From: Octopus sinensis
Taxonomy: Eukaryota
Assembly: GCF_006345805.1 (NCBI RefSeq)
Contig: NW_021836129.1
Span: 248,001 to 312,000, forward strand
DNA: 64,000 bases
Direction: 5' to 3'
Shown here: piece after piece, positions 5,396 through 46,934 of the stretch
How the letters are laid out: each line of letters starts with the position of its first letter
Numbering within the stretch: the first letter of the stretch is position 1
Notes under the pieces: generated by a model
Database searches by the model: none
What the model saw: the letters and a program-made list of their open reading frames with translations, nothing else
What the model was told of the DNA's origin: nothing
Program-made: the position numbers and the translations under genes

Positions 5396-7501
5396 ATGTC
5401 AAAACATGTTTTATTTGAGGATGAATTAATACAAAATGAAGCAGATTTCCTTCCAGAAACAATCAAAAAAAGGATACATATAATCGCGGAAAGACTAAGG
5501 GAAAGAACTGCTCACTACAAAGCATTGATCATGAAGGATGAAGAGTCTGAAGACGATGGATCGGAGACTTCAAAGGAAGATCAAAGTGGAATATTTAACT
5601 GATATATATTTAGGTGAGCCTGAAATAGAGATTGAGGTGAGTAAAGTAAAAGGAATTCGTTTTAAATGGAAATATAATCAAACTATTAATAGAGAAGGTA
5701 TATATATTAATTTTATATTAAATTAATAAATAAAATATATTTCAAATATAATAGGAAATTTATATTTTTCATGGCTTTGTGTTGTCTCGTTGGCATATTT
5801 TTACAATTCATTTTTCCTCACATTGCGGAGTTCAATGGACGTATATCAAAAGGACAATTTTTTGAGAAAAATTTGGTGTTTTGCTGACTATTTTTGCGAT
5901 TTTATTTATCTTATGGACATGTTTTATATAAAACCAAGATTAGAATATATACAAAATGGAATATTAATAGTATATTCTATATATACTAATATTAGAACGA
6001 CTATAAACAAACTAGAAAATACTATTTTTCTTCAAAACGTTTTAAAGTTTTCTTGATTTAAATATTTTTTGGTGGAAATCCTTTCAATTTTGCCCACAGA
6101 TTTGTTCTACTTTGTCACCATGTCTTTGGACATTCCATTTATTAGACTAAATAGAATATTAAAAGTAACCCCACATCAACCTATCTTGATAATATATTTT
6201 ATTATATATTTTAAAAATATATTAAAAATATAAATTTAATAAAAATAATAATTTATACTAGATTCATTCATTTTTTGAATTCTGGCGACTATTCGACCGA
6301 AAGTCCAAATTCGGCTACATAGTCAGGTTTTTTGTCCCCACTAAAAAAGAGTCACCAAAATAGTCAGCTACATGATCTTCCTCATACATATAGAAGCCTG
6401 TGGATACTACCTAATCTCCAAATACGAAATTCTCTACGGATCCCAAATCCCTTTCGTTGCCATGGAAACTCCCGCCAAAAATAAAACAACAACAAATGGA
6501 TATATAATGGAGAAGGAATGGCCTACATTCGGTGTTTCTACGTGGCCCTGAAGACTGCCTCCTCCATCGGGAACAACATTCCGCCGGAGACATTCGCGGA
6601 AATATGTTTCATGGGGGTGTACTGGATCCTCGGCATATTTATATTCGCTCTGCTGGCTGGCCAGGTAGAAAAGGCGGGCTTATTGGGAGATTCAAGACAT
6701 TTTTGGGTCGGCCACAACAGCCAAGATAAACTATCAGGCCTCGATGGATCAGGCTATTCATTATTTGCAGACAAATAGGCTGTCAGATGAGTTGGTGGAG
6801 AAGGTTAGGGCGTGGTATATGTATAGTTGGAAATATCAAAAATGCTTGGGTTATTTGTGGGGGAATTTATGGGTAGATGAGTCGGAGTTTGTGGAAATAT
6901 TGCCTAAAAAATTACAAGAGTCCATTGCTGTTAATATTCATTTAAAAATTATTAAAAAAGTGAAGTTGTTTAAGGTTTGTACACACAACGTTACATGTGG
7001 TTTATTAATTTATTATTTTTATTAAATAATAATTATTATTTATGAAAAATAAATAAATATAATTATTTAGGGTTTTAGTGAAGATTTATTAATAGAATTG
7101 GTGTGTCGACTAACATCGAGCATATTTCTTCCAGGGGAGTTTGTATGCAAAAAGGGGGACATTGGCAGAGAAATGTACATCATTGCCAATGGACTACTCG
7201 ATGTGGTTGGGGGAGAGAACAACGAGACAGTTTTCGTCACCCTCCAGCCTGGGACTGCCTTTGGGGAGATCAGGTTAGGGGGTCCTGGGAGTGTAGTCTG
7301 ATGGGATTCGAAGGGAGTAACAGAAGGACGGCCAATGTTGTGTCGAGGGGATTCACCTACCTTTATAGTCTTTCCAAAACTGATTTTGAGACCACTATGG
7401 CTTTCTATCCTCAGTCTTATTCTCTGCTTAAGAAAAGTGTCAAAAAGAAACTTAATAAACAGAAACCTAAAACTTTATTTAATCCTTTAATTTTTCGATA
7501 A
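5396..7501 (+). CDS. Cyclic nucleotide-gated channel beta subunit (CNGB/TAX-2-like), multi-exon; 3' end approximate
   Basis: YFCDFIYLMDMF S2-like segment, pore region YIRCFYVALKTASSIGNN (TAX-2-like), C-linker, and CNBD FLPGEFVCKKGDIGREMYII...FGEI...RRTANV. Confidence 0.9.
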
Positions 7502-9801
7502 TTTATTTTTAAATTATTTGATTAACTTCCACACTTAATATATAAAAACCGTTAAATAAATTGATAAAAATTTTAACCTTTAAAATGTTAAAAATCGGCA
7601 AGATAATACATTTTCGATTTGAAAGTAAAATCATCGAATTGATTGGCCCAATCATGCTGCATATTATCACGCAAATACAAAGATATTGCGTGAGAAAGTT
7701 CACAAATTGTCTAAAGAATTTTTCCCCTTGAAAGCCACTTGATTTCAGAATGATAAACTATACATGCAGCTTTCTTTTGCAATAATCATTAAGACCTATT
7801 TGTTTTAGATACAAATTAAAATTACAGCATCTAATCTCGGTTTATTTTGGGATTTATTAAAGCATTCAAGCTTTGGCTGTGAATCAAATGTTATTTTTTT
7901 GACTTTAAAATATTTATGTGAGCAACAATTTTCTGGGTGTACAGACTATTTGTGGCGCCTAAATTTAGAAGGCTAATAAAATCAAGTACTTTTAATGTTT
8001 TTGATTTATACTTATTTAAAAAAATTAGTTTAAACATTAATATATTTTTATTTTTCATTATTTCTAGAAACCACTGAAAATTTTCTGGGACCACGGTTGA
8101 GAACCATCGCATTAAAAAATCAATTAAAAGTATTACATTAATTAAATGTCTTATTGAAAGCATGATTCCTTGTGAATTTACTTCGATAAACATATTATTC
8201 CTGGAAAGACTGGCTGTAGAGCCAATCGAATTTGTTCAATTTGTCCAAATGCTTTTTCCTGGTTATCTTTTACCTTTCTGTGATCAAATTGGTGGTCCAT
8301 TGCTAGATCGAGTGTCGACAAAGACTCCAGGACAATAAAATCCTGTATAAATCCAAAAAATCAGATTTTTTGATATTTTATTAAAAATTATGATTTTTAA
8401 CAACCCTGGTTTAAATGTACAATTCTATCAAACTATTAGCAATTCGGCTACATCTACAATACACAAATTCATATTCCAATATCTAACAAGCACTTGAGAA
8501 GTATTCCTATCAAACACTTGTCTATAACTAACCATCTTTAAATATGTTCTCAAAAAGTAATATGTCACTAAGAACAAACAGCACCATATGAACATTTATG
8601 TTTAAGACACAAATGGAGACACAGTTCTCTGCTAAATAATAGAACAAATAATGTCACTAAATAAGAAACAAAGGACAATGAATAAAAAACCCATTTAGTT
8701 ATTCTGATAATATGAGGGAGACCAATCATATTTGCAATAGTATTGAGTCGGATACATGAAATATCGAAAGGAGAAGTATATAAACGTGTCGGATAATACT
8801 CAATTGGATATAAATAATATGTACAACACGGCACATATATTAGATTACTATACGAGGACTGATTTTGGATATTCTCAATCTCGGATAGTGTTATTTGATC
8901 AAAAAAGAGAAATTCTAAATTATCTTATTGATAACTCTTCTCTGAGTTTATGTCGTGTTTCAAAAAATTAGGTTTAACATTTTTTAGCCAATTTTCATTA
9001 ATGCTTTGCGCAAATATGATTGGATCTGATAAAACAACCCCATTGATTAACGGAAAGTTTAAGAATCCATGCGGACCACTGGACTAGAATATAAGAAATG
9101 ATTGGTAATTATTCAAGATATCGGCTTTAAGTTCTTAAAATCAATTAATTTTAGAGTTTTGATTGATTTCTTGCAGTGTGTACGACATATCAGTCCAGTT
9201 TGGAATTTCAAAATTGTAAGAAAAAAGAAAATTGGAAATAAAGTTAAGCGATAAAAAGTCAAGTTATGAAAATTATTAAAAATAGAAATAACTAAAAAAT
9301 CCAAAGTTTTTATAAAAATCAAAGTCATATGACAAATCAACTATATGATCAGACATATATTAGTAAAATCTTTTCAAGCTGTCTTAAAATAATGAAATGT
9401 TCATTAGACGACAATTCAACGTTTACACCCAATTTTTCTGAAGAAAATTCGTCCAATATCGATTGTTTGAATAAAACCCTAACCTTATTCAGAGCCTTAA
9501 CTAGTTGATCACAGACTTTATGGACCCGTCTAATAAGATTTGATATTAGACAAATTATTGATTAGACGAATTGTTTTTAGTTCAATATTTCATTGAACAA
9601 ATTTTGATAATGTCTAAAAAGAGAAGCAAACATAAAAAAACATATACGGGTCGGCAAATACTTTTGGAAAAGAGTTAATTTTTTACATTTTTGGGAAATT
9701 CGAAAAATTGAAAAGCCGCCTGATGTAGTGTTCTAATGTTTGGCTAAACGTGACCAAAAAGTAATTTATTAAATAAATAATAAAGTTTATTTTATATGAA
9801 A

Positions 9802-11588
9802 TTATCTAGATAACCCTAATCAGTACTGTTGGGATCTAAAATACCAAAGGCGGGAAAACTTTTATATAAAACAGTGGCGGGAAGACTCGACCGATTATTA
9901 CACCGAACCACAATATTGAGACTCTGTGAGCCTCGTGCATATTCCACAGGGTAAAAAGGGACCTTGCAGACCAAATGCATCTACCAGTAAATGAGAACAC
10001 CCACCGGGGCTGACAGGTCGGCATCGATCAAAGCCTGGACACTCCAGGAGTATTTTTTGCCTGAGGGATTATCACACTCTGTAATTTTGTCATAAAACAG
10101 AACGAATGAATTCTTAAGAAAATTCTTGCCGATAATTGCCACGTCATTTCCCGCGTAAACTAATGGCGGGATTATTTTGGTAATTTCCGGGTTCCCCACT
10201 GGCTGCACTATCAGACTATTATTCAGTGGCGAACCACAGGTAATAGGATTACTCCTAATCTGCACTACATTGTACCCCTCCTCTCCACAGGGCACTATAG
10301 CGCGGTATATCAGACAACACTTTGATGTCTTCTTTCTACTTTTCACTCCAAATCTGTGCTCCACGTCCGAATTCCGCAACTTTATTATCCCAATTCCGTC
10401 ATTTCTAATATATTTAATATTTATCCAATATATATTTATATATACAATATTTAATATATTTATTTAATTAATATATTTATTTAAACATAATAAATATATT
10501 TAATATTTATATACACAATTGTCATGGTGGGATCCACAAAGTCATATTCGAGCACGTTTATTCCGTCGATTGTCAACTCCCGCGGAATCACCGTGTTTTT
10601 TTGAGGAGCGCGGGAAATTTGGTAGAATAAACTAGGCACCCCCACATTCCCTTCTGTCCCAATAAACACGTGCAATCGTGCCCTTTCTCCGTGATATCCA
10701 AACAACTGGGAATCACGGTGGGGGGTACTTTCACGGTGGGGAAGGACGACTGGGAGACATCCCTCAGGGTTGTTCTACTCCCCTCAGTCAGGTACCGGGC
10801 TCGGTGATACATGTCTGGTTGGAAGACAATCTTCAGGGTCACATTACCCACGTGTTTTGGGAATTTTGTAAAAAGGGAGGGAAAACTGTTCTCGTTCAAC
10901 ATTTGTATTCTATTTGTAAAATGGCGGGCTTTTCTACGGCAAAAAATTGTTGGGGATGTTTCAGAATGGCTACTTTTTTGGAATTTATTTCTGTAATTTT
11001 TTGGTTTTCTAATTCCCGCCTTTTTATTAGGGTAACCACCTCACCTTGTTTGTTACTCTTCCTTTATTAGGGGGACTAAATTCAGTGGAACGACTCCCCG
11101 GGGTCTAAAATCACGTGTTAGAGTACTACAGCATCCGAGGACTGTGCCACTGTGTCAAACAACTCAGAATCAGGTCTCAGAGGGGAGGCGTCTTTAAAAG
11201 GACATTTCTGGCCCGCCAATTCCCCGGTTTCTGAGTTGTAGAGTGGCGACCCTACACAGGAATAGTAGTTCATTGTGGATTGAGTGACGTGGGGTGGTTT
11301 TGTGGTTGTTATTTGTGCATTGTTTGTGGCTGTTTGGTACATGTCTGTGTATGTGTATGAATTATTAGGTAGGAGAGGACATTGGGGATTGTTAGAGGAC
11401 TTGTCTTCACCCCCCACTGAAGTCAGTTGGCGGAAGAGTTCACTCAAAGCAGTCCTCTCTTCAGGATTTGACATTGCGTTTTGAAAAAGTGATAATAATG
11501 TGCTCTTTGTGGGTTGAGCAACATAATTGTCTGAGGGTGTCTCGAAGGGGGGATAAAACATGGAGGAGTAATTGTCCTCTGTGTGCAT
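9802..11588 (-). CDS. NFAT5: NFAT5-like Rel-homology transcription factor (RHD plus IPT), multi-exon; ends approximate
   Basis: LKIVFQPDMYHRARYLTEGSR..DVSQSSFPTVK, LRNSDVEHRFG..KKTSKCCLIYR, and IPT segment EITKIIPPLVYAGNDVAIIGKNF. Confidence 0.88.
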
Positions 11589-16519: not shown

Positions 16520-16660
16520 CAAGACCAAGACTTTAATTCTACCCTTTGCGCGAGCGGTCTTCTTTGAGTGTGCATCCACCTCTTCAGACAAATACCCAGT
16601 GCCCAGATTATTAAAGACGGGACTGTAACGGGTGCCGTGGATGAGATTAAGTGAACAGCA
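16520..16660 (-). mobile_element. Diverged fragment of the 5' ORF of the 24-28.5 kb LINE family
   Basis: LGTGYLSEEVDAHSKKTARAKGRI aligns with LGTGCVSDQVDAHPKKTTGAGGRI of the full element; the DNA shares tcttctttg(a/g)gtgtgcatccacct with 27900-27925. Confidence 0.75.
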
Positions 16661-20341: not shown

Positions 20342-22645
20342 TGTACGTTTTAGTTAATAAACAACTTAGTATCTTGAAAATAATTGTATGATTAGAAATG
20401 TAATGCCTTTTTAAGTTGTATTCTTTCGGTATAGCGATTAACTGGTTACACACCAAATAATTAAAATTAAAAATATTTTATATTTTAAAGGCTCGCGGCC
20501 GCACCTATACATGCATGTTTGAGCAACTCTGCTATAGATCCTGAACTTCTATTTGTGAAGAATTGATTAGTATTTACACGGGTCTCTATCTTGCTGAAGA
20601 TTTTGTCAACAAAGGGAAGGATACAAATATCTTGATGTAAGTTGCTTTATTTCGTACTAGTTGTTTGATTTCCTTCCGTCGTTGTGGGATTTCCAACTGC
20701 TAGATTTTCAATTCCTACTGTATTTTGTTTGTTTGATGGGCTTACCTCATGTTTTCTATCAGAAAATGATTTTGTTGATCGAATTTTACTAATTACTCTT
20801 TTATTAACCTAATAGCTTTAAGAGTGCCTGTTTCGTGATTGATTTATTTTTTAAGCTATTCTGATAGGGTTTTTACTGATTCCCATTTATTACACATAAG
20901 AGGCATATTTATATACCAGTGAAATATAGTATCAATATTATTAGAATTATGCAACTTGCTCTGAGTCACATGACGTGTGCACCAACTACAACAGATTTAC
21001 CAATTCAAACTATTTATTTTGTGAAAAGATGTAGGTCACATAACATATTCACATAATCTCACCAGACCTTCCTGTATATCTACGCGAAGCAATTGTTCGT
21101 CCGACGTTATCCATAAAGTGGTAGATTTTCTTTGATCTCACAGGTTTGAATGCCATGGGGATAAAAATGTTCCAAAAAATTTATTATTTATTTTTTTACA
21201 TTAGCCTTGTTCCCTGCGTGCCCATGAAATAAAGCCGACGACATATTGTTTGACGTATCAGTGATAGAATCTTACTCATTCAGCTTAAGTCGCACAAAAG
21301 TTTTTGCCAAGCCCCTTGTTATCGACGCGTACACATTAATGATTGTGAACAGGGAGTAGGGATTAGTTTCATATTTGATTTAAGCACAGCAATTAAAGTT
21401 CTATACCAATTTGAAAGCTTGGAAACCACTGAAAATAACTTTGATAATTCTTCGAAAGACTAATCGATTATTGAATTAAAAAAATGATATTGGCGATAAT
21501 TATTTGTATTAGACTTAAAAATTATAGTGTCTAATCCTATTAGATCGTGGAAGATGTAAATCTGGACATTCAAAATTCATATCTGTATTTAGAAATCTCA
21601 CCAGACCTTCCTAGATAGAGTTCTAAGATCGGTCCCAGACTTCACTAGGAAGGTCCAAGGAAAAAACTGACACAATTTTCGAACTCAGGGGCTAATTTTT
21701 GTTAATTTGGTTATAAATTATTATGTTATAAATTATTATTTGATTATAAATTATTGTTTTAAATTTTTCTAGTGGCTCCACGTGCTAAGGGCTTGAGGAT
21801 CAATTTCGGATCCACTTAAGTCCCCTACTGTAATACATCAAACCGCAAGTATCCTACTAAATTTGACGAAATACATCAAAAAAACAAACCGCAGTGGCGA
21901 TTAACATACTCAATCAATTCTGTAAATAAAAGTGTTCATATTCAAGTCTAAAAATGCGCTTTTATTTCAACGAAAAAAAACGCGAGTTCTCTGCTTGTGT
22001 GCAACCAATCAGCCTAATTTTTTCAGGAAAGCTGCATCCCATGATGATTGACTATATTAACTAGTTCGGCCTCCTCTGTATTTTTCGTTCACCTCAAACT
22101 AAGGAATCGTGCGGTGTGGGTCTTATGACGTGAGACCAGCTGTGAAAATGAGAAAATAAATTAATTAAAAAATGAATCTATATCAATTTTGACGTTTTTT
22201 GACCGTTTTTGGAAGCAAAAATAGTGTCAGATGTTCCTAGATTTGAATATATTTATAGCTACTACAATAAAAGCTAAGGCATGACGTCTATCCGTAATTA
22301 ACTTTCAAAGGCTGAAGTTAGAACTGGGTAAGCATAATAGTCAATATTTTCCATATTTTCATCGAGGTAATGCGTAATTTTTGTTTCTTGTATGCATCCA
22401 ATAGAAACTTTAAATCTTTCTAGGTCGTCACAAAGAATATTTCTTGACTTAGATATTCAGCATGCATTGAACGAAAGAATCTTTAGGGCAAGCATATTCT
22501 CTGTATCTTCTGCTTTTTACAAATGTTTCTTAACCGTTGTACGGAAAAGTGACGAGGCATGTGACCACCTCACCAAAACTATTAAATTATTATTATTTTT
22601 TTTTATTAGAACAAACCAACCAATGACTACAAGTTAATTAATTAA

Positions 22646-22805
22646 AAGCTTCAAGGGCGGGAAGCCGACGCGATCGAGAAAGAGTTAGAGCGTACTATCG
22701 CAAGGGATATCCGCTCGAAAAACCATCTTGATTCGCGGGCGTCGCCTGTGATGGCAGACATGCGGGACCCGATTGCCTTACTGCCCGATCTCCTGAACGA
22801 AGCTT
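22646..22805. ncRNA. GC-rich island with extensive self-complementarity; candidate structured ncRNA, identity unknown
   Basis: Closing stem 22655-22664 with 22777-22786 (9/10 pairs), inner stems gacgc/gcgtc, gatcgaga/tcttgatt and gagcg/cgctc, all in AT-rich flanks. A TTTT run follows on the minus strand. Confidence 0.4.
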
Positions 22806-23106: not shown

Positions 23107-24006
23107 ATGCAACTGGATTCTCACAGCAAATTTTGCGTTGTTGAGCCAAGGAACATTCTCCTCCCAATGATAGACGACAGGAAGTGGTCCAAAATCTCTG
23201 TTAATGATATCAGGTGTCGGACCACTACACACGCAGGTTTCACAAGAGCTCCCGAGGAGTACTTGTACTTAGAAGGCCATGTGAGTGACATGTACACACA
23301 TGGTCATCTTGTCATGAAGTATCAAACTTCTACATCTTACAACATGAGGATCTGGTTTTGGCAGACATACATTTGCGCGCAATCGGGCTTCAGTTAGCCC
23401 CTACCAAGGAAGAGGCACTACACGCTGTTGACCAGTACACAGCCGGAAATGTAGAGAAATATACGAGTGAGCTTGATTGAAAACAGTATTCAACTGATTC
23501 AGCGACTCTCTCGTTCCTTGGACATCCGCGTCTCGATCCAGGACATCTCAGACAAAGCAGGCAGCTTCGCTCAGTACTGGGCAAGTATGCACACGACTGT
23601 GGAGCCCCTGCTGGAGTTAGAGAGTGACCCCTGGCAAGATGTTTCTCGCTTCCCAGGGCTCTGGTACAAAGGTGCTCAGGGTGAATACGTGACTAGAGAG
23701 GTGGGTATGCGAGATTTGGTGATGGCTGTGACCAGTGTACTGCAGGATGGGAAGGGTTATTCACTGCACCCTCCTGGCTGCTTTCGGTCGGCAAAGAACA
23801 TAATGCTAGTAGTACGCTACTACATTATGGCGGACGATCAGAAGACCTCCCTCGCCAATGAGCTCCAGAAGCACAGTGACTCTGCCTCCATCAGGCTCCC
23901 ACATGGGAACATCGGGGTGAATGCTTTAAAGAATTACTTTGGTTATCTGGGAACCAAAAGATTTATGTGCAATAGACATGAGTTCCGGGGGGGAAAAACA
24001 TTATAA
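23107..24006 (+). CDS. Intronless GC-rich orphan ORF (~290-300 aa after two frameshift corrections), possible endogenous viral element; copy 1, complete
   Basis: Three overlapping frames join into MQLDSHSKFC...ADIHLRAIGLQLAPTKEEALHAVDQYTAGNVEKY..SLIENSIQLIQRL...GTKRFMCNRHEF. About 50% GC and no introns, unlike host genes; no motif recognised. Confidence 0.6.
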
Positions 24007-27000
24007 GTTAAGGGAGTTAAAAACTAACTAAGTAGACCTTCGGCATCGCTGCCTTTTCAGTCTCCATCTCACACACGCCTCCCTACACACAACCACAGGT
24101 TAAGACTTACCGCCTTACCTGCCATCCAGAAATAATCTTCTCTAGGACCTCAGAGAGGCCTTTGAGAGATGATTCCTGGGCGTCGGAGAGCTCAGTCCGG
24201 AATCCTAAGCCATAGGCTAGCCTTATGGCTCGTCTTCTTACTTTTTTAAGCACGTCAACATGCTTATCCCTGTCCTCATAGAGGTACCAAGCGTGGACGC
24301 CATAGGTCAAGACGGGTAACACCATGGCGTTAAACACGCGGAACCAGGCACCTCTGCTCAAGCGGAAAGCACGCAACGCACCTAATCGCTGCATTGCACG
24401 CATTTTCGTACGTGCAATGTGATCATCAAACTTACCGGACGGCTTAAAGAGCACGCCCAAATAAGTCATCCGATCAACTGCAGCGATTGCTGACCCGCTC
24501 AGCAATAACCTAGGAACAAAATTAGTGTAACCCCTCGTCCTTTTACAGACTTTAAGGACACTGCACTTGTCCGCGCACATTCTCAGACCCCTACTCCCAC
24601 ACCAGTTTGCAAGTCCATCCACAGCAACCTGAAGCCTACGACACGCACACTCCGGTTTCATTGAGTGATCCCAGAGGATAATGTCGTCTGCATAGATTAC
24701 CATTTCAGTACGAGCATTGACTGGCATAGGCGCAGTGGCCATAAACACATTGAATAGTGTCGGACTGAGCACAGAGCCCTGAGGGACCCCGCGAAGGACT
24801 GTTGCGACTTTAGAAAAGACCCCCTGATGCCGCACGACCTGCCTGCGAGATTCAAGAAACCCCGACAGCCAGCGCCTTAGACACGGAGAAACCCCACACG
24901 TGGCAAGGGAACTCCGGAGGCCGTCGTGCCACACCGAGTCAAAGGCCTTTTCAATGTCGAGACTAACTAAAATACCGCATTCCCTTTTCTGGAGGGCGTT
25001 CTTCATACCAGACGACACCTTGTGAAGGCAGTCCCCGCATGAGCGGCCCTCCCTGAAGCCCCATTGGAACTCAGGGAGGGCGTCTGCAACCATCAGCTCC
25101 TCCAGGAGCCTTTGGTGCATAATTCTTTCTAGGATTTTAGATATTGCGGGGAGCAAGGAAATGGGCCTATATCCCCCGGGACATCATGTGGCTTACCCGG
25201 GCTTTCCGATAAGGATTACCTCAGCCACTTTCCACCTGGAGGGAATCATCCCAAGTCGCAAGCTCCCGTTAAATAAAACCTTTAGTGCAGTGATTAACCG
25301 CGGCGGGGCCTTCTTAAAGATGGCCATCGGGATCCGATCCAAACCCGCCGCGGTGTTCTTACTTCGGGAGATTGCTGCCAGAATCTCCGCTTCAGTAATT
25401 TCGCCTGCATCGTTCCTTGATATGCCCAGCTGGCAGCGCTTGTCCCACGACAATATCTGCTGGACAGTATCAAAGGACGATGTCTCTACGAACTGACTTC
25501 CGTCAGTTCCCGAGATGCCATTGAGATGGGCTGAAAGTATTTCAACCACCTCAACCGGGTCCGAAGCGAGGGTTCCATCAGAGCGTTTAAGGCGCACTGA
25601 CTTAGCCCCCCTTCTCCCCGACAGGCTCTTCAACTGCTTCCAGAAGTCCGGAAAGCGAGGGTCCACCCTTCGGCAGGCCCTCTCCCACCGCGAACTTTCG
25701 AGTTCGCGGATTTCTCTTCGGATCTCCCTCTGAAGCCGGCTAATCCAGCCACGAAACCAAACACGGTTCTCCTCGTAAACGCATTTGTCCCGTAGTCTGG
25801 ATAGCCGGCGCTTGAACCTAATTTTATTTAAGATCCGGTGAGGGAGCGTGGAATGTGCCTGACCCTGCACTGAGTTTTGTTTGAAATTATCTCGCATGTA
25901 ATCAGTCAGGGCAGCATTGATTCCATTATCAAGCGCCTCCAACTCACGTATGTTGGCGCAGGTATTCCCCACCAGAAGTGAGGGCAACCTGCTGGCCATG
26001 AAACTCTCCAGGTTAGCCCAGGAACCCACCCGGAGGTCAAAGTATCCTGGGACCCTTTGAGGAACTGGCTCACGGAGTTCGTGCAATAGAGGCAGATGGT
26101 CGCTCCCAATATCGGACAATAAAATAGTTTTACTAACCCAATTTAGAAGACCGGGACTGACCAGAGCAAGCCCTAGCCAGTCACGTCCTCCCCTCGCGTC
26201 GACGTGGTTTGGCTCGCTCGAAGTCCGGATTTCCAGCCCGAGGTCTTCAACCAGCGTCTTCAGAGCCAAACCATGCGAGTTGGTTACCCTGAAACCAAGA
26301 TCTTGATGCTTGGCATTCAGGTCCCCAACAACCATGGCCTTCGGATGCTTTTCAAAGAACTCCCGTACGTGCCAGGAGCACGCCGTAAAGTTCTTCGAGT
26401 ACATCCCACCTAGGTAAAATGTTAACTCGCCTATGCGAATTCTCACTTGGAGGAATTCACACAAGCTACATGAACATATACCTGGACTCTGCAAGGCAAG
26501 GTAGGGCTTGTAGAAGAGGCTAGTTCCTGTGCCACATATTGACCCCTGTTTCCAGGGTATGTGACGACAGTTGTAGCCATCAACTACGTACGGACCCCCC
26601 TTTACCTTCGTTTCGTTGACCACCAGAATGTCCGCACTCGTGGTGGCCAACATCCTCTGAACGGCGTCCCTTTTTCCTTCCAAGGAACGCGCGTTCACCG
26701 ATATGATGTTGAGCATCATATCGGTTTCTTCGCCAAGGATCTTCTTGGCCTCGGCAACGTTGCAGTGTAGCATTTCCTCTACACTGCAATTCATCTCCCT
26801 ACAAAATTTTAATAGGGAAACGCATAATTGCACCGCAGGACTAATACTGTCCTGCGGTACACGCTCGCCAGGGGCTGAGTGCAATGGCATCTCCACGTAT
26901 GGAGGACGCCTTTTCAGCCCCAGGTTGTGCCGGACGGCGCCGCCGTTAGCCGCCTCAGAAGGCATTGCCGGCTTAGGCAACCAAGCGGACTCGGAAGCTT

Positions 27001-28556
27001 TCACCTGCTTTGCCAACTTTGTCGGCGAAGGCTGCACCGACCCACACGTAGCATGGCTCACAGGTTCCACTGTCTTCGCCACCCAAACGGATTTGGAAGG
27101 TTTGGCCAGTATCGCCTGCTTGCCAGGTTTTGGCGCAGGGCGCGCGACGCGACGCGGGCGACTTACTGTTGGGATTACATCCCCACCTACCTTTCGGGTT
27201 GCCTCCTTGAACTTGGGGCAACCTCTGAAGTTGGCAGTGTGTCCCAACTTACCACAGTTGACACACTGCCTCTCCTTGGATGGTGAGGGGCACGTCTTGC
27301 GACCATGCTCCCCACCGCAAATAAGGCACTTCGCCTTATCCGGGCACTTTGTGGAGATGTGCCCGAACCCCTGACACCGAAAGCATTGGGTGGCTTTCGG
27401 GCGGGGCCAGGCAGCTCTCATCCTAATGTAGCCGATCCTAGTACCCAGAAGTACTAGGCGCTCGGCTTCCGCAGGAGATCCCAGGATGACCTCCACCACT
27501 TCAAGAGGGCGGTTACCCTGCTTGAAGCGTGCAAGGGCAGAGGCACTGGGGTACTCCCGCTGTATGTGTCCTAAAAGGTCATTATCCTCGAAGTCCCGGG
27601 GGACCCCGAGGAGCAGGACTCTTACCTGCCTTACCTTTTGTTCAATCCTGACAAGCCGATGCATGCCAGGACCGAACGGGCTGGACTTCTCCAGCTCTCC
27701 TTTAAAGCTGAAGAAGTCCTCCTCCTTCTCCCACCCAAGCAGGAATTGGGTGGGCTCCCTCTTCAGGACTCTATACAGCTTTGAAGGCTGGATAGAGTCT
27801 AACGTACCTAAGATCTTTATGACCGAGGCCTTCCCACTTGTAGGGAGGACCTCAAGTCGTGCCACAGCACCGAAGGTAATTCTGCCCCCGGCGCCAGTGG
27901 TCTTCTTTGGGTGTGCATCCACCTGATCGGACACACACCCAGTACCTAAAACATTAGGGGGGGTTGGACGGCCAGCCGCACGTTTGGGTTTCCCCACCGT
28001 GTACCAACCGTCCTCAAGGGCAACCTTATTTCCTGCCGTACCCACCGGGACGGCCTCAGGAGACGACACCCCCTGTTGGCATTAATTGACTTACCTAGGC
28101 TGGGTTTGGTACCACTAGACAAACCGCAAACACGTGGCGAACCAGCATGCTGTGCGGTTGTGGTGGATACCAAACGATCAGAACCAGTTGCACCTGCAGC
28201 TCCCCCGACACCAGCCATAGGGGGAGCAGAGGAAGAAGTGTCTCCAGTGAGTGCTGAACCCACCTGGGAGGGTCCAGGCTTCGACTTCTCCTTCCTGCTT
28301 TCGCCTAGAAAATTAAAGACACCACTAGAATAGCCGGAAGCGCGTGGCGGTGAACCACGGCTCCGGCAATTCATCGTAGTGGCACACTGAACCGTCTTGT
28401 CCTTCTGGGAGAGCGAGGCGGGAACACCTCCACTTCTGCATAGTCTTCTTAGTGCAGACAGCTTGCGAGCAGATTTTGCAGACAACTGTTTCCTTGGTAC
28501 TTTTGCACCAGTAGATTTTCGAGCCGTTTGTTTTGTTCTAGCCATATTTTATTATT
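23986..28556 (-). mobile_element. Full-length APE-type non-LTR retrotransposon (Jockey/I-like Gag) with an N-terminal histone H3 tail
   Basis: Three CCHC knuckles (CFRCQGFGHISTKC, CLICGGEHGRKTC, CVNCGKLGHTANFRGC); APE motifs NARSL, NETK, GDLNAKH, SDH; RT motifs YRPISLL, DIEKAFDSVWH, GVPQGSVLSP, YADD, YLG. High GC against an AT-rich background; ends defined by flanking duplications. Confidence 0.95.
24107..28545 (-). CDS. Reconstructed single polyprotein H3tail-Gag-APE-RT (~1480 aa)
   Basis: Joins ORFs 27946-28545, 25193-28069 and 24107-25156. It needs one extra G in the run at 28069-28073, and compensating -1/+1 G at 25196-25198 and 25173-25177, which restores KPGKPHDVPGGYRPISLL. There is no stop between Gag and APE. 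Confidence 0.65.
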
Positions 28557-29122
28557 TTGACCAGTACACAGCCGTTGACCAGTACACAGCCGGAAATGTA
28601 GAGAAATATGAGTGAGCTTGATTGAAAAAGTATTCAACTGATTCAGCGACTCTCTCGTTCCTTGGACATCCGCGTCTCGATCCAGGACATCTCAGACAAA
28701 GCAGGCAGCTTCGCTCAGTACTGGGCAAGTATGCACACGACTGTGGAGCCCCTGCTGGAGTTAGAGAGTGACCCTGGCAAGATGTTTCTCGCTTCCCAGG
28801 GCTCTGGTACAAAGGTGCTCAGGGTGAATACGTGACTAGAGAGGTGGGTATGCGAGATTTGGTGATGGCTGTGACCAGTGTACTGCAGGATGGGAAGGGT
28901 TATTCACTGCACCCTCCTGGCTGCTTTCGGTCGCAAAGAACATAATGCTAGTAGTACGCTACTACATTATGGCGGACGATCAGAACCTCCCTCGCCAATG
29001 AGCTCCAGAAGCACAGTGACTCTGCCTCCATCAGGCTCCCACATGGGAACATCGGGTGAATGCTTTAAAGAGTACTTTGGTTATCTGGGAACCAAAGATT
29101 TATGTGCAATAGACATGAGTTC
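28557..29122 (+). repeat. Second (partial) copy of the orphan ORF: duplication of 23428-23985 plus an extra 18-bp tandem copy at the junction
   Basis: ttgaccagtacacagccg occurs twice (28557-28574, 28575-28592), then the sequence matches copy 1 to GAGTTC. Differences are almost all 1-2 nt deletions. Confidence 0.95.
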
Positions 29123-30026
29123 CGGGGGGGAAAAACAATTATAAGTTAAGGGAGTTAAAACTAACTAAGTAGACCTTCGGCATCGCTGCCTTTTCAGTCT
29201 CCATCTCACACACGCCTCCCTACACACAACCACAGGTTAAGACTTACCGCCTTACCTGCCATCCAGAAATAATCTTCTCTAGGACCTCAGAGAGGCCTTT
29301 GAGAGATGATTCCTGGGCGTCGGAGAGCTCAGTCCGGAATCCTAAGCCATAGGCTAGCCTTATGGCTCGTCTTCTTACTTTTTTAAGCACGTCACATGCT
29401 TATCCCTGTCCTCATAGAGGTACCAAGCGTGGACGCCATAGGTCAAGACGGGTAACACCATGGCGTTAAACACGCGGAACCAGGCACCTCTGCTCAAGCG
29501 GAAAGCACGCAACGCACCTAATCGCTGCATTGCACGCATTTTCGTACGTGCAATGTGATCATCAAACTTACCGGACGGCTTAAAGAGCACGCCAAAATAA
29601 GTCATCCGATCAACTGCAGCGATTGCTGACCCGCTCAGCAATAACCTAGGAACAAAATTAGTGTAACCCCTCGTCCTTTTACAGACTTTAAGGACACTGC
29701 ACTTGTCCGCGCACATTCTCAGACCCCTACTCCCACACCAGTTTGCAAGTCCATCCACAGCAACCTGAAGCCTACGACACGCACACTCCGGTTTCATTGA
29801 GTGATCCCAGAGGATAATGTCGTCTGCATAGATTACCATTTCAGTACGAGCATTGACTGGCATAGGCGCAGTGGCCATAAACACATTGAATAGTGTCGGA
29901 CTGAGCACAGAGCCCTGAGGGACCCCGCGAAGGACTGTTGCGACTTTAGAAAAGACCCCCTGATGCCGCACGACCTGCCTGCGAGATTCAAGAAACCCCG
30001 ACAGCCAGCGCCTTAGACACGGAGAA
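29123..30026 (-). mobile_element. 5'-truncated copy (904 bp) of the same LINE
   Basis: Near-identical to 23986-24886 (3' UTR and RT C-terminal half) with the same 3' junction after GAGTTC; truncated at ...gacacggagaa. Confidence 0.95.
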
Positions 30027-30359
30027 GGGCTCTGGTACAAAGGTGCTCAGGGTGAATACGTGACTAGAGAGGTGGGTATGCGAGATTTGGTGATGGCTGT
30101 GACCAGTGTACTGCAGGATGGGAAGGGTTATTCACTGCACCCTCCTGGCTGCTTTCGGTCGGCAAAGAACATAATGCTAGTAGTACGCTACTACATTATG
30201 GCGGACGATCAGAAGACCTCCCTCGCCAATGAGCTCCAGAAGCACAGTGACTCTGCCTCCATCAGGCTCCCACATGGGAACATCGGGGTGAATGCTTTAA
30301 AGAATTACTTTGGTTATCTGGGAACCAAAAGATTTATGTGCAATAGACATGAGTTCTGA
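30027..30359 (+). repeat. Third (partial) copy of the orphan ORF (330 bp = 23656-23985) carrying the native TGA stop
   Basis: Matches copy 1 from gggctctgg to GAGTTC, then continues TGA agggaaaaaatttatataat instead of the LINE tail. Confidence 0.95.
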
Positions 30360-30379
30360 AGGGAAAAAATTTATATAAT

Positions 30380-30440
30380 AAAAAAGTATCATTCCGAAAT
30401 TTTATTGAGTAATCCAAAAAGTATCATGCCGAAATTTTTG
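30380..30440. repeat. ~36-bp motif pair (aaaaaagtatcattccgaaatttt...gagtaat), repeated at 32113-32170
   Basis: Two tandem copies here and two after the minisatellite, read directly. Confidence 0.8.
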
Positions 30441-31299: not shown

Positions 31300-31416
31300 C
31301 AGAGGGGATATCTCAATGATGGCAACTTGCGAGCAGATTTTGCAGATTCGAGCAGTTTGTTTCCTTGGAACTTTTGCTCCAGTAGATTTTCGAGCAGTTT
31401 GTTTAGTTATAGCCAT
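31300..31416 (-). pseudogene. Second, degenerate histone H3 N-terminal tail fragment without histone fold
   Basis: MAITKQTARKSTGAKVPRKQ, then an internal copy of AAACAAACTGCTCGAA that shifts the frame, then SAKSARKLPSLRY. No fold-domain sequence found downstream. Confidence 0.85.
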
Positions 31417-31650
31417 ATTTTTTTATTTCAGTTAGAACCGATTCAGGCGAGTTATTTTTGTTTTATATAGTTAAACAACATTATGAATGAATGAAGAATT
31501 TTATTGTAAGAAAGAAGAGCGAGACAGAAACTTAGTGCGGAAAGTAATTTTGACGAGACGATTGCTTTGGGCATTCGAGCTCTTCCATGGTTCATCCGCT
31601 TTGTCTGTCTATGACTGATGAGACTAATGAAGAAAGAAGAAAGTAGGTTC

Positions 31651-32108
31651 ATGCTTCTGAGCCTTCTAGGCCCGTATGCTTCTGAGCTTCTGAGCCTTCT
31701 AAGCCTGTATGCTTCTAAGCCTGTATGCTTCTAAGCCTGTATGCTTCTAAGCCTGTATGCTTCTAAGCCTGTATGCTTCTAAGCCTGTATGCTTCTAAGC
31801 CTGTATGCTTCTAAGCCTGTATGCTTCTAAGCCTGTATGCTTCTAAGCCTGTATGCTTCTAAGCCTGTATGCTTCTAAGCCTGTATGCTTCTAAGCCTGT
31901 ATGCTTCTAAGCCTGTATGCTTCTAAGCCTGTATGCTTCTAAGCCTGTATGCTTCTAAGCCTGTATGCTTCTAAGCCTGTATGCTTCTGAGCCTGTATGC
32001 TTCTGAGCCTGTATGCTTCTGAGCCTGTATGCTTCTGAGCCTGTATGCTTCTGAGCCTGTATGCTTCTGAGCCTGTATGCTTCTGAGCCTGTATGCTTCT
32101 AAGCCTGT
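31651..32108. repeat. 16-bp minisatellite (gcttctAagcctgtat / gcttctGagcctgtat), 26 regular units plus a degenerate left end
   Basis: 18 A-variant units, 7 G-variant units and 1 A-variant unit. The segment 31485-32107 is flanked by a 13-bp direct repeat, taaacaacattat. Confidence 0.95.
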
Positions 32109-32309
32109 AAACAACATTATTCCGAATTTTTTCGAGTAATGCAAAAAAGTATCATTCCGAAAATTTTTTGGTTAAATCACTCACCATTTTTAAAAATAAA
32201 AAATTAAATATTTTTAAAATAATATTTTATCATCACCATCAAATAATTGTAACTATTGCTTAAATTGATGAATTTTGCGAGATTACAGACTAAATTACTA
32301 GTGTACTAA

Positions 32310-35299: not shown

Positions 35300-36445
35300 C
35301 ACCCTCATCATCAGTCCCCACATCATCCACCACAGACTTCCCCAACACATCTAACAATACATCCAACAATCCTACCATTAATAACCCTCTCCTTATATCT
35401 CCTACTCAAACTATCCGCCTCCTTCCAATGCGGAGGAGTGGGCGGACTCCTTCCTCTCCCAGGCGATCGGTACCTCTAAAATAACCCCTCCAAACAACCT
35501 CAGCCCCCCTCCCTTTAATAACACGACCAGAACGATCAACTCTATTCTCCCCGTAGTTATACTTTTTGACCACAACAGGCCCATTCCGATTCCTTTTTAA
35601 GAAATTGACGGGGGTTTGGGGGATTTCGTCAGGATCGATGACAATTGAGCCATATTCCTCAGCATTGACATTTCCTCCCATTCCCTTCTCGGCTGCCCTG
35701 GCCATTTTCTCCTTAAACAATCTCCTTTCTTCTTTCCTCTTCAATTTAGCCTCTCTTCTTGCATTTCTTTCTTCTTTCCGCTTTATTTTGGCTTCTTTCT
35801 CAGCCTTCCGTGCTTTCTTTCTCACATTGGTCTGCCACACCATTTCTCCACACCCCTCAATCGTGACACTCGTCAACGGACGGTTGTGTTTGTCCGTCTC
35901 CAACGACTCAATTCGCCTAATCACGGAATCTCCTGAAATCACTTGTCCAAAAACCACGTGCTTTCTTACAAATACACAAAAATATTTCAAAACCCGTCCA
36001 AATGAGGGCAGGGGACTGTCGTTATGAAAAATTGTGAGGCGTTTGTGTTGGGGCCCTTGTTGGCCATGGAAAGCAGGAAAGGACGGTCGTGTTTTACTAA
36101 AAAATTCTCGTCTAATAAATTCAGGTTTTTTAGACTGACCGTCGAATTTCTTTCCGTAAATACTTTCTCCGTTGGTTCCGTTTCCCGTGATTATGTCGCC
36201 GCCTTGGATCATGAAGTTTGGGATCACTCTGTGGAATTGATTCCCTTCGTAGTGGAGGTTAACTCCTGTGGATTTGCTGTCTCCCAATTCGCCTGTGCAG
36301 AGAGCTCGGAAATTTTCGGCGGTTTTGGGGACAATTGATTTAAAAAGTTCAAATATTACTCTTCCGGCTAATATTTTTATTATTTATATTGAATTTAACC
36401 TTCTTGGTCACCAATATTTATATCAAAATAGCATCTCGGCTCCAT
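35300..36445 (-). CDS. PPIG: Peptidyl-prolyl isomerase G-like cyclophilin; 3' end approximate
   Basis: [12 protein letters not shown]...[15 protein letters not shown]...[14 protein letters not shown], a K/R/E-rich linker, and the PPIG-type motif RYRSP...TPPHWKE. Confidence 0.85.
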
Positions 36446-46756: not shown

Positions 46757-46934
46757 AACATATTCGTGGTCAACGAAACAAAGTTAAAGCAGGATCGGTA
46801 CGTAGTTGATGGCTACAACTGCTGTCACATACCCTGGAAACAGGGGTCAACATGTGGCACTGGAACTAGCCTCTTCTACAAGCCGTACCTTGCTCTCCGG
46901 AGCTCAGGTTTATGTTCTTGTAGCCTATGTGAAT
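46757..46934 (+). mobile_element. ~180-bp internal (APE-domain) fragment of the H3-tail LINE family at the duplication junction
   Basis: VVNETK..DRYVVDGYNCCHIPWKQGSTCGTGTSLFYKPYLAL...CSCSLCE matches the reverse complement of 26452-26640, roughly 85% by eye. Confidence 0.92.

Follow-up and report, generated by a model that had tools for sequence, protein, structure and literature searches.

The window analyzed here, a 64,000-nucleotide stretch of the Octopus sinensis genome (contig NW_021836129.1), contains a LINE whose full-length and 5'-truncated copies alternate with three copies of a small open reading frame (ORF), and the locus looks like an odd single insertion followed by local re-copying rather than the product of a site-specific element. 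We propose, with a probability of roughly 45%, that one target-primed insertion made a 558-bp duplication of the target, and that the second unit arose locally from the first, with the existing ORF/LINE junction used again in out-of-register repair copying or re-priming.

Organization of the locus

On the forward strand the order of the elements is ORF…GAGTTC, the full 4,571-bp LINE (minus strand), an extra 18-mer with a 558-bp ORF repeat, the 904-bp 3' part of the LINE, a 330-bp ORF repeat and TGA (Table 1). This anatomy had been proposed in a preliminary description, and every element of it was reproduced to the nucleotide by repeat finding, self-BLAST and direct reading; as the repeats are exact and hundreds of bp long, chance is no concern. 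In both units the direct repeat that abuts the 5' end of the LINE equals the sequence abutting its 3' end, which confirms the target-site duplication (TSD) geometry suggested earlier.

Table 1. Features of the LINE/ORF locus in window coordinates (a slash within a motif marks the breakpoint or nick position).
Feature	Position	Strand	Description
Target ORF copy A	23358..23985	+	~208 codons once one frameshift near 23452-23467 is bridged
GAGCCC/TGGG	23652..23661	-	Exactly at the 330-bp repeat breakpoint
Full-length LINE	23986..28556	-	4,571 bp; APE endonuclease, RVT_1 and CCHC zinc knuckle by Pfam
Extra 18-nt copy of TTGACCAGTACACAGCCG	28557..28574	+	Between LINE 5' end and ORF repeat
ORF copy B	28575..29122	+	Matches 23428-23985; GAGTTC end at 29117-29122
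5'-truncated LINE copy 2	29123..30026	-	904 nt, equals 23986-24890; tail and GAGTTC junction as in full copy
ORF copy C + TGA	30027..30359	+	330 bp (30027-30356) equal to 23656-23985; TGA at 30357-30359
Flank past nick, TGAAGGGAAAAAAT	30357..30370	+	9/14 positions match the reverse complement of the LINE 3' tail (CGGGGGGGAAAAAC)

The final 558 bp of copy A (23428-23985), with the terminus ...CAT GAG TTC (GAGTTC at 23980-23985), constitute the segment that is repeated downstream. Copy A had been termed a full ORF; the copy is present, but its frame is not intact, with a stop or frameshift near 23452-23467. Similarly, the equivalent of the 558-bp segment is indeed duplicated, but copy B itself measures 548 nt. 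Compared to copy A it carries eight small deletion events of 1–2 nt each, mostly in homopolymers, and one substitution; deletions in such number occur in this middle ORF copy alone. Copy C is 100% identical to copy A over 330 bp, up to the GAGTTC end that precedes TGA. Here, non-LINE DNA adjoins the ORF at exactly the junction nucleotide, and the bases differ from those of the LINE tail.

The 18-mer TTGACCAGTACACAGCCG is found once in copy A (23428-23445) and as a tandem pair at 28557-28592, where the extra copy reads as a probable scar of slippage or re-priming. The truncated LINE copy meets the ORF at 23655/23656, with one shared A at 30026. The 18-nt extra copy and this 1-nt microhomology agree with the earlier view that the 5' junctions are LINE-like. 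Except for small indels, one substitution within a tract rich in indels and, at the edge of a homopolymer, a change from CCCAAA to CCAAAA, the three ORF copies and both LINE copies are identical, indicating that the whole arrangement is very recent and local. The ORF is GC-rich, as is the LINE, and the surrounding DNA is AT-rich.

A word-indexed protein search with the target ORF gave no match, and an exhaustive search among billions of proteins gave four weak matches (P0122-P0125), unannotated proteins of 158-196 aa, of which P0122-P0124 can be aligned as family members (E 2e-5 to 7e-4). The source contigs of all four are short, ~0.5-1.5 kb (L002-L004, 0.9-1.5 kb). No further ORF copy was found elsewhere in the window or in L001, the one other copy of the LINE retrieved. 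With no extra copy there and no close protein relative, the ORF does not appear to be an obvious multicopy safe-harbour target.

The LINE and its family

The element is an APE-type non-LTR retrotransposon (LINE), as its ORF2 contains an N-terminal apurinic/apyrimidinic-like (APE) endonuclease and, after it, a reverse transcriptase (RT). In both the window copy and L001, Pfam identifies Exo_endo_phos_2, Exo_endo_phos and RVT_1, and the RT region matches human L1 ORF2p structures (E ~1e-7). No Pfam domain for a restriction-like endonuclease (RLE) was found downstream of RVT_1 in either copy; ORF2 stops soon after the RT and is followed by a 3' UTR of ~120 nt. In ORF1 the N-terminus is histone-H3-like and Pfam detects a CCHC zinc knuckle, with two more CCHC-like motifs recognized by eye when L001 is translated, and the 5' UTR of the full-length copy is ~13 nt. 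A poly(A) or simple-repeat tail is absent from the LINE, which ends in ...ATAATGTTTTT followed by a short pyrimidine tail that differs between loci. Such 3' tails are found in many LINE clades, but not in all, and their absence, as in R1-like elements, is compatible with LINE membership. In the window the 3' end reads ...CTTATAATGTTTTT plus the 8-nt tail CCCCCCCG (23986-23993; LINE sense), and this tail adjoins GAGTTC in both LINE copies. The first ~470 bp of LINE copy 2 carry three indels and one substitution. An Rfam search of the window gave no matches, and neither did an exact-match scan for the LINE 3' end in metagenome contigs. A protein search with the 958-aa LINE ORF returned zero matches at E≤1e-20, its candidate list probably being saturated by low-complexity words.

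L001, on a different contig, is 97% identical to the window LINE overall and 99.9% identical across the 3' 3.4 kb, the two loci differing by ~1.5 indels per kb. A dispersed near-identical copy and a 5'-truncated copy with a common 3' end (904 nt) are as expected for a LINE, and the element is young and recently active. The window copy, L001 and a fragment at 31311-31428 begin at the same nucleotides; the full-length 5' end claimed previously is therefore real, and the junction to ORF position 23428 represents a run-off 5' junction. At the 5' junction of L001, 15 nt of its upstream flank are present in an additional copy, analogous to the 18-nt copy in the window.

The flanks of L001 are unrelated DNA that has nothing in common with the window ORF or GAGTTC/TGA. 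No 12-mer or longer is common to both flanks, and hence there is no long flanking repeat (n = 1); a short TSD was looked for in L001 and none was found. Its 3' tail is TTCTCCTC..., versus CCCCCCCG in the window. TSD length is inconstant, with 558 and 330 bp in the window and no TSD detected in L001. Given the unrelated site, the lack of a long repeat and the other tail, the family lacks strict site specificity and does not produce long TSDs at every insertion, and its tails vary among independent insertions; this comparison draws on one further copy, with a long duplication at one of the two loci examined. The preliminary description had inferred sequence-specific targeting of a regenerated GAGTTC/TGA site. 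L001, essentially the same element in unrelated DNA, with another tail and no common flank 12-mer, is the kind of finding named there beforehand as contradicting that idea, which is not supported as a property of the family. The alternative offered alongside it, repair-coupled retrotransposition, remains reasonable. We also considered the ORF as a part of the LINE (an antisense 3' module) and rejected this, as L001 is the same LINE without the ORF.

Target-site features

The minus-strand motif GAGCCC/TGGG at the 330-bp breakpoint is in register with the first-strand site GAGTTC/TGAA (30351-30360, plus strand). The pattern GAGYYCTGRR, which was chosen post hoc, occurs six times in the window versus 1.1 expected; at the 558-bp breakpoint no GAGYYC/TG motif was found. 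For the likeness between the flank past the nick and the tail (CGGGGGGGAAAAAC), anchored identity gave p ~0.001 against the window background and unanchored local alignment gave p ~0.05. The match was noted post hoc and is suggestive only. The right flank of copy C was also considered as an old LINE 3' remnant, a candidate that was rejected with a likeness of only ~15-30 nt and borderline significance.

These features could reflect an APE endonuclease that prefers GAGYYC/TGR, maybe via pairing of tail and target, and that integrates only where the opposite strand has a similar site, which would result in variable TSDs of hundreds of bp and re-use of the regenerated site. We consider this rather improbable. 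If true, the element would parallel R9 and Dualen as an APE-only case outside rDNA, and the positioning of second-strand cleavage could be studied in it as a natural system.

Origin of the arrangement

In the account that we prefer, a young APE-type octopus LINE would have inserted once, through target-primed reverse transcription (TPRT). A plus-strand nick between GAGTTC and TGA, at the last codon of the small intronless ORF, would have supplied the 3'-OH that primed a full-length cDNA. Rather than the 5' end being joined a few bp away, the cDNA end may have met the opposite strand 558 bp upstream, where a single slippage would have given the 18-nt tandem, and the 558-bp stretch would then have been copied again to yield ORF–LINE–558-bp ORF repeat–TGA. 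Several sources are conceivable for the opposite-strand end, between which the sequence does not distinguish: a second-strand break at a distance, the nascent strand of a replication fork or repair synthesis primed by microhomology.

The second, truncated unit would derive locally from the first, without the endonuclease targeting the site anew. At the equivalent of 23655, within the 558-bp repeat, a fork may have stalled or the DNA may have broken, and the resulting end may have been elongated out of register, with either the upstream ORF copy or a read-through transcript of the resident LINE as template. The new strand would then have crossed the existing GAGTTC/LINE junction and proceeded 904 nt into the LINE, before end-joining over 1 nt of microhomology reconnected it to the far side of the break. 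The same sequence would result if the 558-bp repeats had undergone unequal exchange and then an internal deletion, or if the regenerated nick had been primed again in the same event. The anatomy and junctions of the locus, the identity and youth of the LINE and the different behaviour of its second copy are observed; the order and nature of these steps we infer.

The same 8-nt tail on both window copies, with another tail in L001, points to one junction that was copied rather than to two independent primings, and a shared tail and junction are what the preferred account leads one to expect. Against this account, GAGCCC/TGGG at the breakpoint and the flank–tail likeness would fit an endonuclease with a real preference that cuts both strands, and with it a genuine second insertion. 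Moreover, 5' truncation with 1-nt microhomology is exactly what an ordinary second TPRT event would be expected to give, and the account does not predict that small deletions should be in excess in copy B alone.

Two independent target-primed insertions at the same phosphodiester bond are conceivable but unlikely. A GAGYYC/TGR-like preference would direct both, the second entering the site regenerated by the long TSD, with second-strand cuts 558 and 330 bp away. Such a history would accommodate the TSD geometry in both units, the typical 5' truncation and 1-nt microhomology of the 904-nt copy, the minus-strand GAGCCC/TGGG precisely at the 330-bp breakpoint and the 9/14 match of flank and tail, and it has a precedent in R1 tandem arrays, which are made by re-insertion into the TSD (PMC2718515). 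However, L001 is the same element in unrelated sequence without GAGTTC, without a long flanking repeat and with another 3' tail, and an element without strict site specificity would be very unlikely to hit one bond twice in a genome of gigabase scale. The missing GAGYYC/TG motif at the 558-bp breakpoint also argues against it, as does a target ORF that is apparently no obvious multicopy safe-harbour (without a further copy in the window or in L001 and without a close protein relative).

It is also doubtful that the locus is an assembly artefact, in which two alleles or somatic variants, ORF-LINE(full)-558-TGA and ORF-LINE(904)-330-TGA (with a 3.9-kb internal deletion), were chained via the shared ORF. 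The second allele, with its 1-nt microhomology, is obtained exactly when the first loses 24891-28556, the additional 18-mer and the initial 228 bp of copy B. In addition, the would-be bridge is the only noisy segment, with eight deletion events per 558 bp in copy B and the indels and substitution at the start of LINE copy 2 (~470 bp), whereas copies A and C are identical and the two LINE loci differ by only ~1.5 indels per kb. The assembly (GCA_006345805.1) is presumably built from long reads, and assemblies of this kind commonly contain false duplications that arise from heterozygous structural variants. If this explanation were true, one insertion with a 558-bp duplication and one deletion would remain. 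On the other hand, an overlap of only 558 bp is short for long-read overlap, the window is free of Ns and gaps, and both novel junctions are clean.

Highly improbable is a concatemer in which read-through (3'-transducing) LINE transcripts are joined head to tail, formed by template jumping in one event and inserted elsewhere, with the ORF pieces as transduced 3' flank instead of target: LINE RTs do switch from a template's 5' end to the 3' end of a second template (discussed in PMC2718515), concatenated RT products are known for L1 (PMC11702581) and the ORF resembles the LINE in its GC-richness inside AT-rich DNA, but the rightmost ORF copy ends at the same GAGTTC nucleotide where the LINE joins the other two units, with bases beyond that are unlike the LINE tail, and 5' truncation would be needed precisely on the LINE/flank boundary, which the target-duplication model predicts for free. 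The non-LINE DNA at the exact junction nucleotide after the rightmost ORF copy led us to reject both this concatemer and a plain tandem triplication of the ORF+LINE unit with deletions.

To our knowledge, second-strand breakage and 5' end joining form the least understood part of LINE retrotransposition, and very long target duplications are natural experiments on this step. A germ-line cephalopod case with an APE-only element would extend the range of such events beyond elements that possess an RLE as well. The present basis is one locus in a noisy long-read assembly, the only other examined copy being ordinary, and its practical value is as a pointer to a genome-wide comparison of junctions in a young LINE family.

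Comparison with known systems

Long duplications flanking LINEs are already known for Dualen, R9 and L1. L1, also an APE LINE, produces small tandem duplications at insertion sites (PMC11702581), and in human cells and tumours the insertion sites also show templated insertions and concatenated RT products; all are ascribed to the way in which the broken ends are processed or replicated (PMC11702581; PMC10760644). The L1 cases differ in being poly(A)-primed and mostly somatic or experimental, and among the L1 examples considered here a nested double unit with the target present three times is absent (PMC11702581; PMC10760644).

R9 of bdelloid rotifers shares a long TSD that is attributed to distant second-strand cleavage; unlike the octopus LINE it is RLE-type and specific for 28S rDNA, and its TSD is fixed at 126 bp (Gladyshev and Arkhipova, 2009, cited in PMC6895275). 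This length had been put forward as exceptional in the preliminary description, a view that is outdated: insertions of Dualen-4b_cRei in Chlamydomonas mutation-accumulation lines have flanking duplications with a median of 900 bp (10.1101/2022.05.23.493040). As in the octopus, hundreds of bp of target are duplicated on both sides and the lengths vary between insertions. Dualen, however, has both RLE and APE, the cause suggested by the authors, whereas the octopus element shows only APE, and more than half of the observed Dualen-4b_cRei insertions are affected, compared to one of the two octopus loci examined.

R1 forms tandem arrays in Drosophila rDNA by re-insertion into its own 14-bp TSD (Stage and Eickbush, 2009; PMC2718515). 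It is strictly 28S-specific with a constant 14-bp TSD, whereas the octopus LINE has spacers of 558 and 330 bp in an apparently single-copy ORF and its other copy at an unrelated site. Both are APE-type elements without poly(A), with head-to-tail copies that are spaced by duplicated target and all 3' ends at one nucleotide. Microhomology at 5' junctions is likewise common to the two, and the "insertion site rearrangements" of R1 include extra target copies of 16-27 nt (PMC2718515), comparable to the 15-nt copy in L001.

Structure of the LINE Locus

The plus-strand order of the units at the LINE locus was agreed by repeat finding, self-BLAST and direct reading, and the layout of ORF, LINE, 558-bp and 330-bp units put forward in the preliminary description proved to be base-exact. 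The two features it reported at the LINE 5' junctions are also present, namely the 18-nt tandem and a 1-nt microhomology (A at 30026) common to the truncated LINE and the 330-bp repeat. At their 3' ends, both LINE copies carry an identical 8-nt tail adjoining GAGTTC. The rightmost ORF copy ends at the exact nucleotide where the LINE joins in the other two units. The proposed geometry of a target duplication holds for this locus.

Features of the LINE locus, of its surroundings and of the second family copy (L001, on contig VCDQ01012037.1)
Feature	Position	Strand	Description
GC-rich block	22640-22805		~165 bp, 58% GC, AAGCTT at both ends
ORF copy A	23358-23985	+	ends ...CAT GAG TTC at 23985
Full LINE	23986-28556	-	4,571 bp, directly after ORF copy A
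H3-like ORF1 start, full LINE	28460-28545	-	
18-mer TTGACCAGTACACAGCCG	28557-28592; 23428-23445		2x in tandem; 1x in ORF
ORF copy B	28575-29122		repeat of 23428-23985 (558 bp), GAGTTC end at 29122
Truncated LINE	29123-30026	-	final 904 nt of LINE
ORF copy C	30027-30356		repeat of 23656-23985 (330 bp), GAGTTC end at 30356
Stop TGA	30357-30359		directly after ORF copy C
Motif AAAAAGTATCATKCCGAAATTTT	30381-30440; 32144-32170		brackets the satellite
LINE 5'-end fragment	31311-31428	-	118 bp, 85-90% identical, H3-like ORF1 start
Satellite CTTCTAAGCCTGTATG	31663-32109		16 bp, 28 copies
ORF with cyclophilin-type peptidyl-prolyl isomerase domain	35406-36287	-	Pfam E 4e-17
Short diverged fragments, same or related LINE	16534-16603; 46758-46934		81-86% identical
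L001, full-length LINE	6213-10734		
L001, H3-like ORF1 start	6227-6315	+	

No Pfam domain was found in the target ORF. Its only relatives are three weak matches of 158-195 aa, a fourth (P0125) being a cluster member of one of these, and their contigs, drawn from ENA, a JGI metagenome sample and Logan assemblies of sequencing runs, are all short (535-1,523 bp). As the relatives extend 15-25 residues past the octopus stop, the octopus ORF may be C-terminally truncated. Further ORF copies were found neither in the window nor in L001. The isolated GC-rich block, for which Rfam gave no match, lies upstream of the ORF and is surrounded by AT-rich DNA, and one of the motif copies that bracket the satellite follows ORF copy C on the right, starting after only ~25 bp.

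The LINE Element

The minus-strand ORFs of the LINE contain a CCHC knuckle, an APE-type endonuclease and a reverse transcriptase (RT) similar to human L1 ORF2p structures. Part of the RT is 100% identical to the Octopus sinensis RefSeq protein LOC115231655 (209 aa), so the window derives from this species or a very near relative. The gene of that protein lies on the contig of L001, where a second full-length copy is found. Both copies are mosaics: identity between them reaches 99.9% across the 3' 3.4 kb, against a divergence of ~7%, which includes 6-nt and 30-nt indels, in the 5' 1.1 kb (ORF1). This pattern suggests subfamily recombination or 5'-end replacement. Because the 3' parts are near-identical and each copy has private frameshifts, at positions not common to both, the family has been active very recently. 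The window LINE, L001 and the 118-bp fragment start at identical nucleotides, only ~13 nt before the ORF1 ATG, so the "full-length" 5' end is genuine.

The ORF1 N-terminus closely copies the N-terminal tail of histone H3 (H3 residues 1-30 in PDB, E ~2e-7) and is seen in all three LINE 5' ends. A literature search found no LINE ORF1 with such a tail, which may derive from capture of an H3 5' end or may mimic a histone. The 118-bp fragment, ~950 bp from the LINE locus and in matching orientation, comprises the LINE 5' end only, which is unusual for a LINE.

Comparison With the Second Family Copy

The family comparison was made with L001, the sole other copy obtained. Its flanks are unrelated to the target ORF, GAGTTC is absent from its 3' junction, and no 12-mer or longer is common to both flanks. 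The 3' end has the common ...ATAATGTTTTT, followed by the tail TTCTCCTC..., the window tail being CCCCCCCG. At the 5' junction, L001 has a 15-nt extra copy of its upstream flank, which parallels the 18-nt tandem of the window as well as what are termed "insertion site rearrangements" in R1 (PMC2718515). The 5' joining mode therefore looks typical for the family; the long duplication and the target, judged against a single copy (n = 1), do not.

In target sequence and duplication length, the octopus LINE did not behave as a site-specific family. The geometry of the earlier interpretation stands. Its sequence-specific targeting of a regenerated GAGTTC/TGA is not supported by L001 as a property of the family, and the check it proposed on the junctions of other copies returned, for L001, a different tail and no long flanking duplication.

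Origin of the Nested Arrangement

In our view the locus began with a single target-primed reverse transcription, started at a plus-strand nick at GAGTTC/TGA; its 5' end would have slipped once and been resolved 558 bp upstream. As the source of the second unit we prefer a local one, in which the ORF/LINE junction already in place was used again. Inside the 558-bp repeat, at the counterpart of position 23655, a break may have arisen or a fork stalled, and the exposed end would then have been elongated out of register, with either the upstream ORF copy or a read-through transcript of the resident LINE as template; synthesis would have continued 904 nt into the LINE before the end was joined back. 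Close variants would have the regenerated nick prime again, or an unequal exchange followed by deletion. Local re-use requires no site specificity, and would be the reason why both window copies have one tail and L001 a different one.

It is improbable, at roughly one chance in five, that the tandem is instead a false join of two alleles, one with the full insertion and one a 3.9-kb internal-deletion derivative. Removing 24891-28556, the extra 18-mer and 228 bp of copy B yields exactly ORF-LINE(904)-330-TGA. Copy B has eight small deletion events in 558 bp, and the ~470 bp of truncated LINE next to it show three indels plus a single substitution; no difference separates copies A and C, and the window LINE differs from L001 by only ~1.5 indels per kb. 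The small deletions, mostly homopolymer, are concentrated at 28575-29600, the sister copies being clean, and look like long-read consensus noise in one segment. A false join is one explanation for this confinement; candidate causes are low coverage or a false bridge in this part of the assembly, or synthesis that was truly error-prone. Even under a false join, one insertion with a 558-bp duplication would remain.

A true second insertion, by a sequence-preferring endonuclease cutting both strands, seems to us similarly unlikely. Two post hoc observations would fit it: the minus strand at the 330-bp breakpoint reads GAGCCC/TGGG, in register with the plus-strand GAGTTC/TGAA, and beyond the nick 9 of 14 flanking positions agree with the reverse-complemented LINE tail (anchored p ~0.001). 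A concatemer of read-through transcripts and a triplicated ORF+LINE unit each fail to explain why the rightmost ORF copy ends exactly at the LINE-joining nucleotide.

Relation to Known Systems

Long LINE-flanking duplications are described for R9, at 126 bp (PMC6895275), and for Dualen-4b_cRei, with a median of 900 bp (10.1101/2022.05.23.493040). L1 insertion sites show small tandem duplications and complex junctions (PMC11702581), and R1 tandem arrays arise by insertion of R1 into its own target-site duplication (PMC2718515). The octopus locus is a further example of such events, involving an APE-only element in a new phylum and having an unusual nested form.
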